A stretch of DNA of 64,000 nt, from positions 11,780,001-11,844,000 of the forward strand of contig JAQFVV010000005.1 of the NCBI GenBank assembly GCA_028023455.1. Reading direction: 5' to 3'. Both the position numbers and the translations under genes were made by a program. Source of the stretch: Epiperipatus broadwayi (taxonomy: Eukaryota; Animalia; Onychophora). Shown one piece after another: positions 2,946 through 46,301 of the stretch; the stretch's first letter is position 1, and each line of letters begins with the position of its first letter. Under the pieces are notes generated by a model. The model ran no database searches. It was not told where the DNA came from and was given only the letters and a program-made list of their open reading frames with translations.

Positions 2946-3890
2946 TTATAAAAATTGTATGAAAAATTGTATAGTGTAATAATCAGTGAAGTGATCAGAT
3001 TCATGTGTTTCCACATTATATTTTTCTCTATCTTTATAATCACATAAAGGACACTTGAACACTTCAGCAATGTGTGCACATTTTTCTTCATTTTGATTAA
3101 ACTTCTGAGAATCTTTCATATGAGTATATTGTTTATGCTTAATTAACGTACTTTGAGAAGCTGCTTTGTAATCACAAAAGTTACAATCAAAAGGCTTTTC
3201 TCCTGTATGTAGTCTTTCATGGCATTTTAACCTATCTTTAGCAACAGTTCTATAATTACAAAAGGTACAGTGAAATGGTTTTTCTCCTGTATGTATTTTC
3301 AAGTGTGTTTTTAATGTACTATTTACAGCTGTCCTGAAATCACATAAATTGCAATGGAAAGGTTTATTTCCAGTATGTCTTCTACTGTGTAGCGTTAAAT
3401 AATATTTATATGCAGTTTTATAATCACACAAGTTGCATTGGAAAGGCTTTTCTCCAGTATGTTTTCTTCCATGTATTTTTAAAAAAGGTTTTTGTGAAGT
3501 CTTAAAATTACATAACTCACAATGAAAAAGCTTTTCTCCTGTATGTGTTCTTTCGTGCCGTTTTAAGTTTTCTTTGACAAAGGTTCTGTAATCACAATAA
3601 GTACATCGAAATGGTTTTTCACCAGTATGTACTTTCCCATGCATTTCCAAACGGGATTTATCAGCAGCTTTATAATCACACACAGTACAGTGGAATGGTT
3701 TCTCACCTGTGTGTATTCTTTCATGTACCTTTAAGTTACTTTTCTTAGCAGTCTTATAATCACATAATCTACAATGAAAAGGTTTTTCTTCTATATAAAC
3801 TGTATGTATTTTTAAAGTATTTTTCTCAACAGAATCATACTCACATGAATTAAAGTGGAATTGTTTTTTTTCCAGTATATGTTCTTTCAT
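2946..3890 (-). CDS. C2H2 zinc-finger protein, 9 fingers, 314 aa (paralog 1)
   Basis: Intact ORF with repeated FxCxxCDYKT...LxxHxRxHTGEKP fingers. Shares the N-terminal MKE and the C-terminal EVFKCxLCDYKDxEKYxVExHExxHFTDxYT with 45048-46301. Upstream exons cannot be excluded. Confidence 0.9.
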   Translation of the reverse strand: MKEHILEKKQFHFNSCEYDSVEKNTLKIHTVYIEEKPFHCRLCDYKTAKKSNLKVHERIHTGEKPFHCTVCDYKAADKSRLEMHGKVHTGEKPFRCTYCDYRTFVKENLKRHERTHTGEKLFHCELCNFKTSQKPFLKIHGRKHTGEKPFQCNLCDYKTAYKYYLTLHSRRHTGNKPFHCNLCDFRTAVNSTLKTHLKIHTGEKPFHCTFCNYRTVAKDRLKCHERLHTGEKPFDCNFCDYKAASQSTLIKHKQYTHMKDSQKFNQNEEKCAHIAEVFKCPLCDYKDREKYNVETHESDHFTDYYTIQFFIQFL

Positions 3891-9769: not shown

Positions 9770-12480
9770 AGTAAACTTGATGCAAATTTTTCAAGATTTG
9801 AATAGTGGACAATACATGCATATGATGATTTGTCAAAATTAATAAAGCTGCTTTTAAGGAAACTCATCTTCTGATGAAAGGAAGTTGAGCAGAATAGGTA
9901 GAAGTTGTTTTGGAAAGGCAGATCATGAAAGGAGAGTGCATAGTGTTGAATTTGCTATAAAGTTTAACCTAGTTTCTTTTATTCTTGGGTTTCCCTGATA
10001 TATCAAGAAAATGTTAATGACAATAACATAATATGTTACCTGAGGTCATTTTATTAGTTGTATATGCTCCAATGGTAGATTCAAAGAATTCAGAGAAAAA
10101 TTTTTTATTCTTGCTGGTTAGCGTTATTTCAAAAACATCATTAAAAAAAAATCAAATAATGCATGAGTTGGAACAGTAGATTTTGCCCAAGAGTTGCTGG
10201 AAATAGTATTGGTACTGAAAACTCAAATAATCTGTTGGAAATGACTATTACAAAAACACTGAACTGAAAAATAAAAAACCATGAATCCATTCTTGTTCAA
10301 AACAATGACATTTAATATATTAAATTGTAGTTTGGAGTCAATTTATAAGAGCTTGTGGATAATAAAATAGTGCATTCCAAGGTTGAAATGATAGTTTTAT
10401 TAAAAATTGATCATATTCCAATCATATTCATAAGAAATATGATATTCATTCTTTAGATGTATGTAATGTCTATTCTAAAGTTCACAAATTATTAAACACT
10501 AAAATTGCTAATTTGGACTTTCAGAATTATTATGTTGCTGAAAAATGGAATTCTCTTAAGAAATATGTTGTGGGATTAAGTAATCTATTTTTGTATTCAC
10601 TGAAAAAAAAAAGAACTTAATTAAAAAAGATTTTTTAATTGGCAGAATAATAAATTGAATGTGGAGTTTCACAACCAATGTAGAGATTTTAAAAAAAAGT
10701 TCAATAACTGAGACTTAAAAATGATTGCAGTCATTTCAAATCTTTTTTTTGGATGTATTGAAAATAATGTATGAATCTGAAAAATGAAATTAATCATAAT
10801 TCTGTTAAATCCATTGATGATATTCTCTTATAAAATAATATAATTTTGAACAGGTAGAGAAAATATTTCAATCTTATTTGGATAGAATTAAGATGATAAT
10901 TTTTAATGAATTTTTCATTCTATTTACATGGACAAAAATATTTAATTTAGTGAAGTTAAAATAATTGTTCTTTGTAAATTTAAAAATGAGAAGGCTAATC
11001 AATGCTGTTATATGTTGGCTTCAAAAATACTGAAATTTTTTAGAAATATATATACTCATGAAGTTATGCTGCCTGATCTTAAAGATGTTTTTATTGTGCC
11101 AATTTTTAGAAAGTAAAGGGGGATACAGATATATGATTACCAGAAACTAAGTGTGATTTAAAGAATCAACCAACAATATATTCATGAATTATTTAATCTT
11201 AATTTGTTCCTTTATTGCATTGCCTTAATTAATTAATTAATCCGTTTTTTATAAAATCTTTATTTTTTGTACAATGCTTACATAACACCCATCAACATCG
11301 ACAGTTTCGATTGCCCCTGCAATCTTCTTCAGAACTATAAAATATATACACATACACATAAATCACACAAACTATATATAAATTATATACAAATTATATA
11401 AACCTTATAAATTCCATACATATATATATTCACGGGGCCATTTGATAATGCCTGACACAATATATTCATAAAAATACACAAACATACCTATAACTTGTAT
11501 ATCCCCTCAAATACATGAATACTCATAAAATAAAATAAAATAAACCTTCTAACACCTTAATTTTAATCTTTTCCCTTTTCTTTTTTATTAAAATTCTTTA
11601 AATTTTTTTTATACATTTAATATATACATCTATTTATTTTTTATTCATTATTATTATTATTTTTTCATATATATTTTTTCATGCTATTATTTTATATCCT
11701 TCAAATATACTTATTCCTATTATTATTTTATTTATTATTTTATATTAATTTATCTTTATAACTTTATATTCTATCCCCATAATTTATAATAAAAAATATA
11801 TATGAAAAAAAAATAATAATAATGAATAAAAAGAAATAGATGTATATATTAAATGTATAAACAAAATTTAAAAAATTTTAATAAAAAAGAAAAGGGAAAA
11901 GATTAAAATTAAGGTGTTTGAAGGTTTATTTTATTTTATTTTGAGTATTCATGTATTTGAGGGGATATACAAGTTATAGGTATGTTTGTGTATTTTTATG
12001 AATATATATATGTATGGATTTTATAAGGTTTATATAATTTGTATATAATTTATATATAGTTTGTGTGCTTTATATTTATGTGTATATATTTTATAGTTCT
12101 GAAGAAGATTGCAGGGGCAATCGAAACTGTCGATGTTGATGGGTGTTATGTAAGCATTGTACAAAAAATAAAGATTTTATAAAAAACGGATTAATTAATA
12201 TATTCATGACTTTTGATGCCAAGAAAATTGCAAGAAAAATGTCAAAAAAAAAAAAAAGGAGTGATCTACATATTGCATTTATTAATTTGGTGAAGATACT
12301 GGACTCTACTAATCAAACAAGTCTTTGACATTATTTGTCGATTAAAGTTTAAACAAGGATAGGCACTAGTTCCATTTTATTTTTGATTTTTATGATAGCA
12401 GTCTTTTGAATTGTTTAATAGTTGACTTCATCAAAAGGGCATCAAGATGTAATACAGATTTGATGATGAAATTTAAATTT
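9770..12480 (+). mobile_element. Degenerate RTE/BovB-like LINE (APE endonuclease plus RT), interrupted by the family C insertion
   Basis: Remnant peptides INKAAFKETHL, RRVHSVEFAIK and VVYAPMVDS (APE domain); VFIVPIF.K.KGD at ~11090; DLHIAFINL and KQG.ALVPFLF at 12260-12385 (RT). Many stops. Confidence 0.6.
11188..12196. mobile_element. Family C ~1-kb palindromic non-coding element with hammerhead-like cores in both arms
   Basis: Near-perfect inverted arms (~11225-11690 and ~11780-12196). A 13-bp TSD AATATATTCATGA lies at 11175-11187 and 12197-12209. Cores CTGAAGAAGATTGCAGGGGCAATCGAAACTGTC at 11300-11332 (-) and 12099-12131 (+). Confidence 0.8.
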
Positions 12481-13218: not shown

Positions 13219-13531
13219 AAATCACTAAACATCACATGATCACCATCTCTTATGCTAGCACATAACTTGCTTTGATTGAAAATTTTATTGTGTTTTCAAT
13301 TTAATTCTCATAGTTTTGTAGTTAAGTAGAGATAAAAAGTGGCTGCTGGAGGGTTGCATTAGATTCTAAGATCTAGGTGCAGTGTTCTCAGATCCAAGGC
13401 TCCTCACTGATGAAGGCCACAAGCCAGAAACTAGTCTGGGGATATTGGATGAGTAGGCAGTAGATTGGGATTTTATGCACAAGCCTTCTGGCATCCATTA
13501 ATTATTCTGGTTGGCACAGGGTGGCACTACT
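13219..13531. mobile_element. Family B copy 2, internally inverted
   Basis: 12-bp TSD ATATTTATGGTT at 13207-13218 and 13532-13543. About 45 bp in one orientation, then ~270 bp inverted. Confidence 0.85.
13401..13442 (+). ncRNA. Type I hammerhead ribozyme (family B), intact core
   Basis: Helix I UCCUCA/UGGGGA, core CUGAUGA, A-[GGC CACAA GCC]-A, GAAA, palindromic helix III ACUAGU, GUC cleavage after 13436. Helix I extends through a GGC/UA internal loop into AUCCAA/UUGGAU. Confidence 0.85.
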
Positions 13532-22860: not shown

Positions 22861-23683
22861 AATATTTTTTTTTAGTTTTAGATGCAAAAAATCTCATCAT
22901 GATTTGAAATTCAGTTAAAGTTTCTAATCAAGTATATATTTGTTTAGTACTTGATAGATTGCATCTAGGCATAGTCAACTTGATTCTGAAGGTCCTGATT
23001 CTTGTCTAGACATTAAATAAGTTGACCAATCCTTATAATTTCTGTAATAAAAGCAAATAGTTGTATACACATAATAGTATTAATAAAATGAAAATAAATA
23101 TAAATCATTATTATTTTTTTGCATATAAATAAAACTGAAAAAGGTTAAACATTAATAATTTTTTTTATATACAAAAATGCTTCTTTGAATAATGCTTCAT
23201 TTCTTCTCAGTGTAACTTATATATTATCATGAATGTTTACGTTATACTTATTCAACATCTTGATTTTTTTTTTTTACATAACTCCTCCCCCCCCTTACTT
23301 TCTCCCTTTTTTCTTATACAGTACTGTAATTATTATATACATTAAACAGCAATGTAACAAAAAATATTATTATACATTTATAACCATACAAATTAAAAGT
23401 AAATTTTTTTATATTTATAGTTTACATTATTATTTATATCTATTATAATTTTTTGCAAAAATTGTGTTTTTATAGTTGCACACACACATGATATATATAT
23501 ATTACTAATTATAATGCAGTCATGTATGCACACATCTCCATAAGTAATATCACTATACATATATATAGAACATTATGTAATATAGGGTATATGAACACAG
23601 ACTTTCACATGACCCACCACTCTCCACTCTATCTAATAACACTGATACACTCAAGCACATATATGCTGAAAAGATAAATAATC

Positions 23684-23727
23684 ACCAATGTATGTATTTC
23701 ATGCTAAACCAGCAATCATCAGTTGGT
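23684..23727 (-). ncRNA. Family A hammerhead, unit 1 (U16.1 changed to C, probably inactive)
   Basis: ACCAA CUGAUGA U UGCU GGUUU AGCA U GAAA UACAUACA UUGGU; the conserved U before the cleavage nucleotide is C. Confidence 0.7.
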
Positions 23728-24156
23728 CCAGATTATCATCTCCCACACATATATACTATAAGTGCTCAGATATATATTAAGATAGACAATCTTCATACTT
23801 TAATGGACTGGCTCCAATCTACTGCACACTCCAACTCTTCAACCATCCATCCAATTGAAAATCCGATGATGGAATGCTCGAAGGCCACCCTAAGGCCGAG
23901 ATTCTTGTCACACCCATGTTGACCCAAGGTCAATCTGAACCCCACATGTACAGGACATAATCCATTAAATACATATGCAAGGATGGGCAGAGATCTCTAC
24001 AATGTAATAACTGATACACAGGCTTAATATATACCATGTGTTTATATATGTAATATAGGGTATATGAGCACAGACTTTCACATGACCCACCACTCTCCAC
24101 TCTCTCTAATAACACTGATACACTCAAGCACATATATGCTGAAAAGATAAATAATC

Positions 24157-24200
24157 ACCAATATATATATTTCATGCTAAACCAGCAATCATCAGTTGGT
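24157..24200 (-). ncRNA. Family A hammerhead, unit 2 (intact core)
   Basis: ACCAA CUGAUGA U UGCU GGUUU AGCA U GAAA UAUAUAU A|UUGGU; palindromic helix III AUAUAUAU, AUA triplet. Confidence 0.8.
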
Positions 24201-25062
24201 CCAGATTATCATCTCCCACACATATATACTATAAGTGCTCAGATATATATTAAGATAGACAATCTTCATACTTTAATGGACTGGCTCCAATCTACTACAC
24301 ACTCCAACTCTTCAACTGTCCATCCAATTGAAAATCCGATGATGGAATGCTTGAAGGCCACCCTAAGGCCGAGATTCTTGTCACACCCATGTTGACCCAA
24401 GGTCAATCTGAACCCCACATGTATACATATGCAAGGATGGGCAGACATCTCTACAATGTAATAACTGATACACAGGCTTAATATATACCGTGTGTTTATA
24501 TATGTAATATAGGGTATATAAGCACAGACTTTCACATGACCCACCACTCTCCAATCTATCTAATAACACTGATACACTCAAGCACATATATGCTGAAAAG
24601 ATAAATAATCACCAATATATGTATTTCATGCTAAACCAGCATCATCTCCCACACATATATACTATAAGTGCTCAGATATATATTAAGATAGACAATCTTC
24701 CTACATTAATGGACTAGCTCCAATCCACTACACACTCCAACTCTTCAACCATCCATCCAATTAAAAATCCGATGATGGAATGCTCGAAGGCCACCCTAAG
24801 CCCGAGATTCTTGTCACACCCATGTTGACCCAAGATCAATCTGAACCCTACATGTACAGGACATAATCCATTAAATACATATGCAAGGATGGGCAGACAT
24901 CTCTACAATGTAATAACTGATACACAGGCTTAATATATACCATGTGTTTATATATGTAATATAGGGTATATGAGCACAGACTTTCACATGACCCACCACT
25001 CTCCACTCTATCTAATAACACTGATACACTCAAGCACATATATGCTGAAAAGATAAATAATC

Positions 25063-25106
25063 ACCAATATACGTATTTCATGCTAAACCAGCAATCATCA
25101 GTTGGT
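25063..25106 (-). ncRNA. Family A hammerhead, unit 4 (intact)
   Basis: Helix I ACCAA/UUGGU, core CUGAUGA, helix II UGCU/AGCA, GAAA, palindromic helix III AUACGUAU, AUA triplet. Confidence 0.85.
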
Positions 25107-25477
25107 CCAGATTATCATCTCCCACAGACAATCTTCATACTTTAATGGACTGGCTCCAATCTACTACACACTCCAACTTTTCAACCGTCCATCCAATTGA
25201 AAATCCGATGATGGAATGCTCGAAGCCCACACTAAGGCCAAGATTCTTGTCACACCCATGTTAACCCAAGGTCAATCTGAACCCCACATGTACAGGACAA
25301 GAATCTCGGCCTTAGGGTGGCCTTCGAGCATTCCATCATCGGATTTTCAATTGGATGGACGGTTGAAGAGTTGGAGTGTGTAATAGATTGGAGCCAGTCC
25401 ATTAAAGTATGAAGATTGTCTATCTTAATATATATCTGAGCACTTATAGTATATATGTGTGGGAGATGATAATCTGG

Positions 25478-25521
25478 ACCAACTGATGATTGCTGGTTTA
25501 GCATGAAATACGTATATTGGT
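25478..25521 (+). ncRNA. Family A hammerhead in the inverted monomer (intact)
   Basis: ACCAA(25478-82) CTGATGA(25483-89) T TGCT GGTTT AGCA T GAAA(25505-08) TACGTAT A|TTGGT; predicted cleavage after 25516. Helix I extends past a UGG bulge into AUAAUC/GAUUAU. Confidence 0.85.
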
Positions 25522-25679
25522 GATTATTTATCTTTTCAGCATATATATGCTTGAGTGTATCAGTGTTATTAGATAGAGTGGAGAGTGGTGGGTCATGTGA
25601 AAGTCTGTGCTCATATACCCTATATTACATATATAAACACATGGTATATATTAAGCCTGTGTATCAGTTATAGAACATT

Positions 25680-26738
25680 CATCATCATCATCATCATTAT
25701 CAACCATTATCAATCCACTGCAGGATAAAGGTCTCTCCAAGTTTAATCCATCTTCTCCGATCTTTAGCTTCTCTTCTCCACATCACCCCTACACATTTTC
25801 TTATTTCATCCATCCATCTTACATGTGGTCTCCTTCTGGGTCTTTTACAATCTCTTGGAATCCAGTTTAAAATTTCAATTGTCCATCTATTATCATCTCT
25901 TCTAGCAATATGTCCAGCCCAACTCCACTTCAATCTTTTAATTTTTTCAATGAGGTCAGTAACACCTGTTTGTTCTCTTACCCATACTTTGCGTTTTCGA
26001 TCTCTTCTTGTTACTCCCAACATACATCTCTCCATACTCCTTTGAGTGGTCTGAAGTCTCTGTATTGATCTTCTACTGAAGTCTCTGTATTGATCTTCTA
26101 TTAAGTGTCCAAGTCTCAGATCCATAAGTAAGAACTGGTAAAACACATTTGTTAAAAACCTTTCTTTTCAAACACATAGGTATATTTCCTTTAATATCAA
26201 GTTATTTCTACCAAAAGCACTCCAACCAAGTTTAATTCTATGATTAATTTCCTCTATTATGTTTCCATCTGTATTAATAATCTGACCAAGGTATTTGTAA
26301 CTCTTAACTTCTTCTAATTCATCATAATCAATCTTTATTTTCATATTTTGAGCAAATCGATTAAACATTACTTTAGTCTTTTTAACATTTATCTTTAGTC
26401 CTACTTTCCTACTTTCATCTGATAACTCCTGCAACATTTCCTGCAGCTCGGAAGCATTATTTGCAAAAACAACTACATCATCTGCGAAATCTAAATGACT
26501 TAAATAATCTCCATTTATTTTCACTCCTTTAGTTTCCCATTTTAATCCACAAAATACTTCTTGCAGCACTGCTGTAAAAAGTTTTGGAGATATGGAGTCA
26601 CCTTGTCATACACCTTTCTCAATGTTGACTTTCCCAGTATCATTATGTAATCTAATCATCAAGGTATAGATCCAGGATATTGTCATATTTTAAAGAATAT
26701 TTATAAAAATGCAACAGCAACAATTAGAATTAGATTAC
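25680..26738 (-). mobile_element. 5'-truncated, 5'-inverted RTE-clade LINE with (TGA)n tail
   Basis: RT motifs KGV*QGDSISPKLF and YLSHLDFADDVVVF; C-terminal LKWSWAGHIARR..RPHVRWMD..LQWIDNG*; tail (TGA)n at 25680-25700. The piece at 26657-26741 reads QGIDPGYCHILKNIYKNATATIR on the + strand. TSD ATAGAACATT at 25670 and 26739. Confidence 0.92.
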
Positions 26739-26875
26739 ATAGAACATTATACAAATTTATATACAGACACATGCATTATGTAATTTTTAATTCACATTTA
26801 AATGGCCAATTCTTAATTTTTATATTGATATTTTGTATATAAAATAAATACTTTTTGTTTATAATATTTAATACA

Positions 26876-27934: not shown

Positions 27935-28220
27935 CAATAAACATCACATGACCACCACCTCTTATGCTTGTGTATCACTGTTGTTAAAGCAGGCAAAACT
28001 CACTATATATATTGCCACCCACAACAAGCTAGAGTAATCCTAAGATCTAGGTGCAGTGCTCTTAGATCCAAGGCTCCTCGCTGATGAAGGCCATAAGCCA
28101 GAAACTAGTCTGGGGATATTGGATGAGTAGGCACTAGATGGGGGTTTTATGCACATGACATCCATTGATTACTCTAGCTTGTTGTGTGTGGCAATATATA
28201 TGGTGAGTTTTTGCTTGTTT
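27935..28220. mobile_element. Family B copy 4, internally inverted
   Basis: 14-bp TSD TAATAATAAATAAT at 27921-27934 and 28221-28234. About 105 bp forward, then ~180 bp inverted. Confidence 0.85.
28075..28116 (+). ncRNA. Type I hammerhead ribozyme (family B), intact core
   Basis: UCCUCG CUGAUGA A GGC CAUAA GCC A GAAA CUAG UC|UGGGGA; the AUCCAA/UUGGAU extension is retained. Confidence 0.85.
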
Positions 28221-28492
28221 TAATAATAAATAATAATGCAAATTGTAAAAGTAGAAAAAAAATCATTATGCTGTTAGCTTGTCAATATAGTTATACATAT
28301 TTTTTATGGTTGTATAATATATATATATATATAATAGTTATATAAAAATAAAGGGAAATAAAAAAAATGTTGATTAAAAAATATACTGTAATTATAAAGA
28401 AAAATATAAATGTTGTTATATATAGTTGTCTATAATTATTTATAACATTAAAGAAGGCAATAAAAATGCTGAAATAAGCTGTTTTTGTATTT

Positions 28493-45047: not shown

Positions 45048-46301
45048 TTACAAAAATCGAATGAATAATTTAACAGTATAATGATCAGTGAAGTGACTAA
45101 CTTCATGACTTTCTACAATATATTTCTCTGTATCTTTATAATCACATAAATGACACTTGAATACTTCAGTAGTGTAATAGTCTAATGCATATTTTACTTC
45201 TTGGTTATTCTGATCATATTCCAGAGAATCTTTTATATGAGTACACTGTTTATGCTTCAATAAAGTACTTCTGGAAATAGCTTTGTAATCACACAAGTTA
45301 CATTGGAAAGGCTTTTCTCCTGTATGTATCCTTTCATGGTATTTTAATCTGTCTTTCCCAATAAATCTATAACCACAAAAGCTACAATGAAATGGTTTTT
45401 CTCCTGTATGTAGTCTCAAATGTCTTGTTAAAGTACACTTTAGTGCAGTCTTGAAATCACATGAATTGCAATGGAAAGGTTTCTCTCCTGTATGTGTTCT
45501 TTGATGGGATTTCAAATTATTCTTGTAAACTGTTTTGAAGTTGCACAAATTGCAACTAAATGGTTTTTCATCCAAATGCGTTTTTTCATGCAGATTTAAG
45601 TTTCTTTTCCAATCAGTTTTATAATCACAAGCACTACAGTGGAATGATTTTTCAGCTATATAGTTTCTCTCATATTTTAAGTTATTTCTTGAATCAGACT
45701 CATAATGAAAGAAGCTATATGGTAAAGGTGTTTCTAATGTACATAGTCTTTCATGCATTTTTAAATTTGTTTCACCATCAGTCTGGTAATCAAATAAATT
45801 GCAATGAACACTTTTTTCCCCGATATGTTTTCTTCTGTGTAACTTCAAATCATTGTTATATGCAGTCTTATAATCACATAAATTGCACTGGAAAGGTCTT
45901 TCTCCTGTATGTTTTCTTTTGTGTACTTTTAAATAAGTTTTCTGCGCAGTTTTAAAATCACATAATTCACAGTGGAAAGGTTTTTCTCCTGTATGTGTTC
46001 TTGTGTGACGATTTAATTTTCCTTTGATCATAGTTCTATAATTACAAAATAAGCAGCCGAAAGTTTTTTTTTCTCCTGTATGCACTGATTCGTGCACTTT
46101 TAAATAATTTTTGTAATTACTTCTAAAGTCACAAAAATTGCAATGGAATGGTTTTTGACCTGTATGTATTCTTTCGTGAACTTTTAAGTTACTTTTCTTA
46201 GCAGTTTTATAAGCACACAAATTGCAATGGAAAATGTTTTTTTTTGTATCTGTCTTTCCAAATATTTGTAAACTATCACATTTTGGTACTTGTTCCTTCA
46301 T
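45048..46301 (-). CDS. C2H2 zinc-finger protein, 11 intact plus 2 degenerate fingers, 417 aa (paralog 2)
   Basis: Intact ORF with TGEKP-linked fingers; termini homologous to 2946-3890. Confidence 0.9.
   Translation of the reverse strand: MKEQVPKCDSLQIFGKTDTKKNIFHCNLCAYKTAKKSNLKVHERIHTGQKPFHCNFCDFRSNYKNYLKVHESVHTGEKKTFGCLFCNYRTMIKGKLNRHTRTHTGEKPFHCELCDFKTAQKTYLKVHKRKHTGERPFQCNLCDYKTAYNNDLKLHRRKHIGEKSVHCNLFDYQTDGETNLKMHERLCTLETPLPYSFFHYESDSRNNLKYERNYIAEKSFHCSACDYKTDWKRNLNLHEKTHLDEKPFSCNLCNFKTVYKNNLKSHQRTHTGEKPFHCNSCDFKTALKCTLTRHLRLHTGEKPFHCSFCGYRFIGKDRLKYHERIHTGEKPFQCNLCDYKAISRSTLLKHKQCTHIKDSLEYDQNNQEVKYALDYYTTEVFKCHLCDYKDTEKYIVESHEVSHFTDHYTVKLFIRFL

Follow-up and report, generated by a model that had tools for sequence, protein, structure and literature searches.

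Metazoan non-LTR retrozymes, which have no long terminal repeat (LTR), primer-binding site or polypurine tract, consist of low-GC (<50%) tandem units measuring some hundreds of base pairs (bp) that each carry a type I hammerhead, and they are flanked by target-site duplications longer than 4 bp (PMC7229834). In the axolotl, the ribozyme HHR_Amex2 has a helix III of 2 bp that ends in a tetraloop, and its helix II has a U-U mismatch at the base; the monomer cleaves weakly and the dimer much better, and the RNA accumulates as circles (PMC7229834). In the satellite 2 hammerhead, helix III is too weak to form by itself, and in dimers it pairs by way of a palindromic loop (cited in PMC7229834 and PMC7761336). 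Retrozymes have been linked to Penelope-like elements (PLEs) on the basis of co-occurrence (PMC7761336) and, in Xenopus, have been proposed as PLE derivatives from the phylogeny of pseudo-LTRs (10.64898/2026.07.22.740005); according to a 2020 review, the metazoan repeats carry no motif that would betray an autonomous mobiliser. The subject of this analysis is family A, a repeat found at 23575-25669 of a 64,000-nucleotide (nt) stretch of the onychophoran Epiperipatus broadwayi (contig JAQFVV010000005.1 of assembly GCA_028023455.1, forward-strand positions 11,780,001 to 11,844,000), which is called the window throughout and to which coordinates refer unless another locus is named. We give a probability of roughly two in three to the reading that this insertion arose in one retrotransposition event from a non-LTR retrozyme family that is non-coding, has a high copy number and integrates in the style of PLEs, the transcripts of which would be cleaved, converted into circles and primed by a PLE.

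At 23575-25669, family A forms a single insertion of 2,095 bp, which lies between 10-bp duplications and is built of 473-nt non-coding units in two opposed arms. Terminus positions are given on a reference unit, the reverse complement of 23969-24441.

23565-23574, no strand: left target-site duplication ATAGAACATT, 11 bp with the preceding T; the 10-mer recurs at 25670-25679 and 26739-26748.
23575-25299, minus strand (the hammerhead sense): main arm, 3.65 units of the 473-nt repeat; its outer terminus is a "short" sense 3' end at about position 395 of the reference unit.
25296-25669, plus strand: inverted arm, a 5'-truncated 0.8 unit of 374 nt; its outer terminus is a "long" sense 3' end at about position 435 of the reference unit.
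25670-25679, no strand: right target-site duplication ATAGAACATT, directly adjoining the (ATG)n tail of a minus-strand fragment of an RTE-type long interspersed nuclear element (LINE).

The two arms meet head-to-head through a 4-nt GACA overlap (25296-25299), and the inverted repeats between them (I1-I6) are 95-100% complementary. Because the arms are opposed, both outer ends of the block are sense-strand 3' ends. The units of the main arm differ by about 2-3% plus deletions, of which those of 19, 24 and 37 nt have shortened units 3 and 4; the hammerhead C3 positions at 23722 and 24195 (minus strand) are spaced by exactly 473 nt, and Tandem Repeats Finder reported a 452-nt period only, over 24423-25299. 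The unit is devoid of coding sequence, with a longest stop-free stretch of 113 codons, no frame open through the repeat and a GC content of 38%. The first-pass annotation had described the block as a tandem array of about 473-nt monomers that starts and ends mid-monomer between target-site duplications. Its period and its boundaries are borne out, while the arrangement is not purely tandem, as the last 374 nt are inverted and head-to-head.

The hammerhead module comprises 72 nt, and its commonest version reads ACCAA-CUGAUGA-U-UGCU(GGUUU)AGCA-U-GAAA-UACGUAU-A|UUGGU. Helix I is formed of 5+6+5 bp and resumes beyond a UGG bulge as AUAAUC/GAUUAU and GAGAU/AUCUU. Helix II comprises 4-5 bp and starts at its base with a U10.1-U11.1 mismatch, and helix III has either 2 bp with a tetraloop or, between two ribozymes, 8 bp through the 8-nt palindrome AUACGUAU. 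Around the core, helices II and III are closed while helix I is open, which is the type I topology. Five hammerhead positions exist in the insertion, of which three have a complete canonical type I core (C3-U4-G5-A6-N7-G8-A9 / G12-A13-A14 / A15.1-U16.1 / H17 not G), namely those of units 2 and 4 and the plus-strand copy, one has two substitutions and one is deleted.

23671-23742, minus strand: extended hammerhead of unit 1, reading GAAAUACAUACA; helix III is UACAUAC after CpG decay and a change of U16.1 to C; nominal cleavage at 23689/23688.
24144-24215, minus strand: extended hammerhead of unit 2, core intact; helix III AUAUAUAU (UAUAUA) has decayed at both CpG positions and has kept its palindrome; predicted cleavage at 24162/24161.
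24610-24650, minus strand: hammerhead remnant of unit 3, which has lost CUGAUGA as well as helix I's 5' strand to a deletion of 24 nt.
25050-25121, minus strand: extended hammerhead of unit 4, with no difference from the commonest version of the family, helix III AUACGUAU; predicted cleavage at 25068/25067.
25463-25534, plus strand: extended hammerhead of the inverted arm, likewise of the commonest version, with predicted cleavage after its H17, A25516.

The two changes in unit 1 leave its helix III non-palindromic and its A15.1-U16.1 pair broken, and judged by its sequence this copy is probably inactive. The motif and the helix I extension past the UGG bulge are as they had been read before, and A25516 is likewise the H17 at which cleavage had been placed. 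The claim of one palindromic hammerhead in every monomer has to be narrowed: the exact UACGUA is found in unit 4 and the plus-strand copy only, with UAUAUA in unit 2, a substituted helix III in unit 1 and a deletion in unit 3. A descriptor requiring the core, a helix II of at least 4 bp, the A15.1-U16.1 pair with one further pair, and a helix I of 5 bp found 3 sites in the window versus 0.01 expected per shuffle (100 dinucleotide shuffles). The minimum-free-energy fold of the monomer includes helix I and a stem like helix II. For helix III, an energy of +2.8 kcal/mol was calculated within one molecule and of -6.5 kcal/mol for the intermolecular 8-bp duplex of AUACGUAU, and these modelled energetics are the classical "active as a dimer" layout.

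Across the 5.6-Gb genome, the core of the U10.1 version has 46,069 exact matches and a sister hammerhead in which position 10.1 is G or A (CUGAUGA-R-UGCUG...GCAUGAAA) has 22,250, with no match to the reversed control pattern in either case. Position 10.1 thus varies between U, G and A, and the U10.1 variant, which has the weaker helix II, is the commoner one. BLAST of one unit against the genome gave 3,700 candidates at a first look, those scored being 95-98% identical; taken together, family A has tens of thousands of copies of about 97% identity and, with a diversity of about 2%, is young. Of 106 hammerhead regions sampled at 24 independent loci, 41 have the commonest version unchanged, and the most frequent variants are two CpG-decay products of UACGUA. 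More divergent relatives are also present. An older subfamily of the 473-nt unit, 88% identical and with a small inverted piece, is found at L043:9306-9758, about 190 bp past the end of a PLE insertion, and looks like a separate insertion outside the PLE. An old relative of the hammerhead region, 81% identical, was found at the locus L049 and a relative of 77% identity at the locus L039; in the former, the distal part of helix I has changed from AUAAUC/GAUUAU to AUGAUC/GAUCAU, the one compensatory change found. Covariation lends the helices thin support, namely this change and the variation at position 10.1.

The hammerhead block also recurs outside this genome. Of the 11 sequencing runs found, none is on record as RNA. 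Contigs of four runs (four other organisms, four studies), for which the library type is unknown and ends, strand and circles are not visible, were aligned to two units at a likeness of at least 80%. Their summed depth over 23671-23734 and 24151-24214 is 3-100 times that of the neighbouring bins, and many of the contigs diverge just outside about 23670-23740, which corresponds to the 72-nt extended hammerhead. The sole well-supported difference inside the block is G23690 to A, the reversal of a mutation private to unit 1; nearly all contigs of the other organisms read A there. From the depth peak and this lone difference it follows that the ribozyme module, U10.1 included, is the part kept across species and repeat families, a retention that may be taken from these alignments as the best available sign of constraint.

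How such copies integrate can be read from the 24 independent loci, the window's own included. The copies are short arrays of 1-5 units, with clear duplications of 10-16 bp at 16 of the 24 loci (10-11 bp in the window, 11-16 bp at 15 of the 23 others), which are AT-rich and different at each locus. Nearly all copies are two-armed and head-to-head with their sense 3' ends outward, and the same orientation is found in neighbouring pairs on opposite strands within 2 kb on contig C1, where 15 pairs of the U10.1 version are minus-then-plus versus 1 plus-then-minus, and 9 versus 0 in the G/A10.1 variant. The termini fall into two classes on the reference unit, a long one at 434-447 and a short one at 345-400, and exactly one end of each class is present in all 18 of 18 two-armed copies, with the long end on either arm; each copy therefore has about 40 extra nt at one end only. 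Diagnostic subfamily alleles are common to all units of an array, its inverted arm included, and the units diverge by a median of 1.8% inside one arm, 2.6% from arm to arm and 3.1% from array to array. This common haplotype implies that each two-armed array is one event from one homogeneous template. A snap-back origin of the inverted arm, by self-copying of the cDNA, was rejected in view of the unequal arm lengths, the two terminus classes and the broad phase offsets of the junctions.

This footprint resembles that of PLEs. Their insertions are described as partially tandem, with an adjacent inverted 5'-truncated copy and a tail of 30-40 bp at one end only, the last being stated as unseen in the target-primed reverse transcription of LINEs (PMC8557442), and all of these features, the one-sided tail of about 40 nt among them, are present in family A. 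For retrozymes, neither inverted arms nor a one-sided tail are mentioned in PMC7229834 or 10.64898/2026.07.22.740005. The arrangement of the copies thus points to an integration that is specifically Penelope-like, which provides independent structural evidence for the PLE link, a modest addition and not a new concept. As it combines opposed arms from one template, a fixed tail of about 40 nt at one end and duplications of 10-16 bp, the footprint also constrains models of target-primed reverse transcription by PLEs.

Possible machinery is abundant, with more than 10,000 GIY-YIG candidates in the genome. A recently active PLE at L043:759-9118 (G000:C12394), also found at L045 and L046, is autonomous and consists of an inverted truncated copy and 2.3 tandem units of 3,135 bp, a layout shared with family A; copies of its family are 97.6% identical, and at least three PLE families have intact open reading frames (ORFs), their proteins being 44-48% identical to each other. 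RVT_1 is present in the database homologues, one of which bears the name of a GIY-YIG endonuclease in its source record. A Pfam hmmscan of the intact PLE ORFs returned no family, probably due to their K/I/N-rich proteins, so that the identity of the ORFs rests on the GIY-YIG hit, the motifs seen and the homologues; standard annotation may overlook such proteins. In a tblastn search, the PLE proteins had no match in the window or at the family A loci.

A model of the life cycle can be proposed from these elements. The arrays would be transcribed, and the hammerheads, probably as dimers across neighbouring units, would cut the transcript into 473-nt monomers, which could then be circularised by the host tRNA ligase. 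A reverse transcriptase/endonuclease from a PLE might prime from both nicked target strands on a multimeric or circular RNA, which would give head-to-head arrays of more than unit length. In a circular fold, 72% of the 473-nt monomer is paired and helix I is extended over a long stretch, and the predicted energy is -127 kcal/mol for the sense strand, which is G+U-rich, versus -91 kcal/mol for the antisense strand.

A number of results weigh against the retrozyme reading, and several of them also favour a rival, a non-autonomous retrotransposed repeat with a vestigial or barely active hammerhead, mobilised as uncleaved read-through multimers with no circle stage. The Rfam hammerhead models gave no match at the gathering score or at E<=10 in the whole window, the 2.4-kb region or the isolated 61 nt, the only Rfam matches being chance-level ones to microRNAs and small nucleolar RNAs. 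The hammerhead call therefore rests on the descriptor match and not on a curated model. The likely causes of the miss are the mismatched U-U at 10.1/11.1 and a helix III that is all but missing; automatic detection suffers from it, while the descriptor match stands. In this genome, Rfam-based annotation overlooks hammerhead motifs by the tens of thousands. The same two features, the mismatch and a helix III of 2 bp, predict slow cleavage, and of nine Xenopus retrozyme dimers only one was cleaved in vitro, the other eight being inactive (10.64898/2026.07.22.740005). Within the genome, the hammerhead region is no better conserved than the rest of the unit, a test of low power because the family is young, and the circular fold has no extra stability over shuffles (z = -0.5). 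Furthermore, the termini of the insertions are displaced from the cleavage site by about 110-160 nt in the 3' direction, which means that the template was not a cleaved linear monomer and must have been either an uncleaved multimer or a circle; the arrays traverse many uncut sites, and homogeneous arms would equally be expected from transcripts of young homogeneous arrays. Against a vestigial ribozyme stands the commonest version itself, which keeps every core nucleotide and is shared identically by the 41 of 106 copies, with CpG decay accounting for most variants. Apart from the extended hammerhead, no block of the unit is kept in other organisms and families, and the very similar HHR_Amex2 cleaves as a dimer and accumulates as RNA circles (PMC7229834). 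We regard mobilisation without cleavage as an unlikely alternative. The retrozyme reading has a further difficulty in its autonomous partner: a BLAST search of the unit against 22 PLE loci of the three families sampled found no non-coding end or hammerhead in common with family A, the only matches being unrelated family A insertions and the L049 and L039 relatives.

The last of these objections comes from the neighbour of the array, and it favours mobilisation in the manner of short interspersed nuclear elements by LINE machinery, that is, by an RTE-type apurinic/apyrimidinic endonuclease and reverse transcriptase, with the inverted arm arising from twin priming.

25680-26738, minus strand: RTE-type LINE fragment, 5'-truncated, RVT_1 with an E-value of 6e-12; its (ATG)n tail abuts the right duplication of the array.

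This fragment is itself flanked by ATAGAACATT (25670-25679 and 26739-26748), so that the 10-bp target occurs three times, which implies two insertions into exactly one staggered cut. The triplicate target could reflect a common nicking preference or a hot spot, and with its identical site the RTE element makes a LINE-driven route conceivable; LINEs, too, typically have duplications of 10-16 bp. However, the ends of family A have neither (ATG)n nor any other LINE-like tail, and none of the other 23 loci has an RTE-like microsatellite tail beside the insertion. Two arms are the rule and not the exception, and the extension of about 40 nt at one end in 18 of 18 copies is the trait described for PLEs and stated as unseen in the target-primed reverse transcription of LINEs (PMC8557442); we consider this route quite improbable. 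An ordinary satellite or segmentally duplicated tandem repeat, spread at the DNA level and with a hammerhead-like motif by chance or as a relic, would fit the tandem arrangement, the missing ORF and the negative Rfam result, but it is hardly tenable and is largely refuted by the short arrays, which are dispersed in their tens of thousands, have a separate duplication of 10-16 bp in each case and end in the same two terminus classes. Chance is also contradicted by the expectation of 0.01 motifs per window and by the control count of 0 versus 46,069 in the genome. Tens of thousands of dispersed short arrays with defined sense 3' ends are thus cDNA insertions and not a locally expanded satellite. 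On this point the first-pass annotation, which had called the array a cDNA copy, is supported, and the single haplotype of each array, inverted arm included, is in agreement with it; its assignment to the non-LTR retrozymes is likewise upheld by the non-coding low-GC units, the type I hammerhead, whose helix III is palindromic and weak, and the duplications of more than 4 bp.

If the retrozyme reading with PLE-style integration is taken one step further, family A may be a natural high-copy read-out of an as yet undefined PLE integration process acting on a retrozyme. In this tentative and rather doubtful extension, the template would be one homogeneous, possibly circular, 473-nt RNA on which both nicked strands prime at two fixed sites about 40 nt apart, so that head-to-head arms would be obligatory and the tail one-sided. 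The U-U variant might be favoured because slower cleavage balances the production of circles against the supply of template, and the triplicate target might reflect nicking that is shared between PLE and RTE elements or in which they cooperate. Irrespective of this, family A is an unusually clean, young and numerous data set from which the integration footprint can be read directly.

Further ribozyme-bearing repeats are found elsewhere in the window. The hammerhead of a second family, family B, is present at about 27936-28221 and also at 13407 (plus) and 61323 (plus), its core being CUGAUGA-AGGCC..GCC-A-GAAA-CUAGU-C and its helix III the palindrome ACUAGU. At 27936-28221 there is one unit, which has inverted ends internally and is flanked by a duplication of about 14 bp, TAATAATAAATAAT. 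Minimal PLE-like hammerhead motifs, which read CUGA(A/U)GA-stem-GAAAC-UGU, are located at 2006 (plus), 11332 (minus), 12099 (plus), 22686 (minus) and 34912 (minus), and the pair at 11332 (minus) and 12099 (plus) is also head-to-head. Together with family A, these repeats bring the number of ribozyme-bearing repeat families in the window to at least 3-4. Apart from the ribozymes, ORFs for C2H2 zinc-finger arrays are present at 2946-3890 and 45048-46301, both on the minus strand (zf-H2C2_2, E-values of 7e-53 and 3e-66), and they account for the 84-nt periodicity reported by Tandem Repeats Finder at 3272-3546 and 45787-46249. The GC content of the window, 26.6%, is very low for an animal genome of 5.6 Gb.

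Among the systems described so far, the plant LTR retrozymes (Cervera et al. 2016, PMC4918200) are like family A in being non-autonomous and non-coding, with hammerheads that were proposed to release unit-length RNAs which circularise and serve as templates for reverse transcription. In contrast to family A, they are characterised by type III hammerheads in LTRs, a primer-binding site, a polypurine tract, 4-bp duplications and a dependence on Ty3/Gypsy elements, none of which is found here. Satellite 2 of newts and salamanders (Epstein & Gall 1987; Forster et al. 1988, cited in PMC7229834 and PMC7761336) also consists of tandem repeats, of a class of about 330 nt, that encode a type I hammerhead. 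Family A differs from it by being dispersed as thousands of duplication-flanked insertions and not in long blocks, and by a helix III of 2 bp versus 1 bp. With PLEs (PMC8557442; Cervera & de la Pena 2014, cited in PMC7761336), family A has in common a type I hammerhead with a weak helix III that would act as a dimer, and abundant elements with reverse transcriptase and GIY-YIG domains co-occur with it. Unlike PLEs, it has no ORF, and its helices I and II are of full length and not those of the "minimal" PLE hammerhead.

The closest match is with the metazoan non-LTR retrozymes, all defining sequence features of which (PMC7229834) are found in family A, with a copy number that is likewise in the tens of thousands. 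The closest ribozyme is HHR_Amex2 of the axolotl, which has the same U-U mismatch and 2-bp helix III; the axolotl circles were seen as RNA (PMC7229834), whereas circles of family A are a prediction. The unit of 473 nt is longer than the approximately 170-400 nt given in PMC7229834 and lies inside the 51-972 bp of 10.64898/2026.07.22.740005. The host is not the axolotl but an animal with a very AT-rich genome of 5.6 Gb, and the arrays are short (1-5 units) and almost always two-armed, a trait that neither study describes. Family A belongs to the known class of non-LTR retrozymes, and this class is not new, because both non-LTR retrozymes and their suspected dependence on PLEs have already been published.

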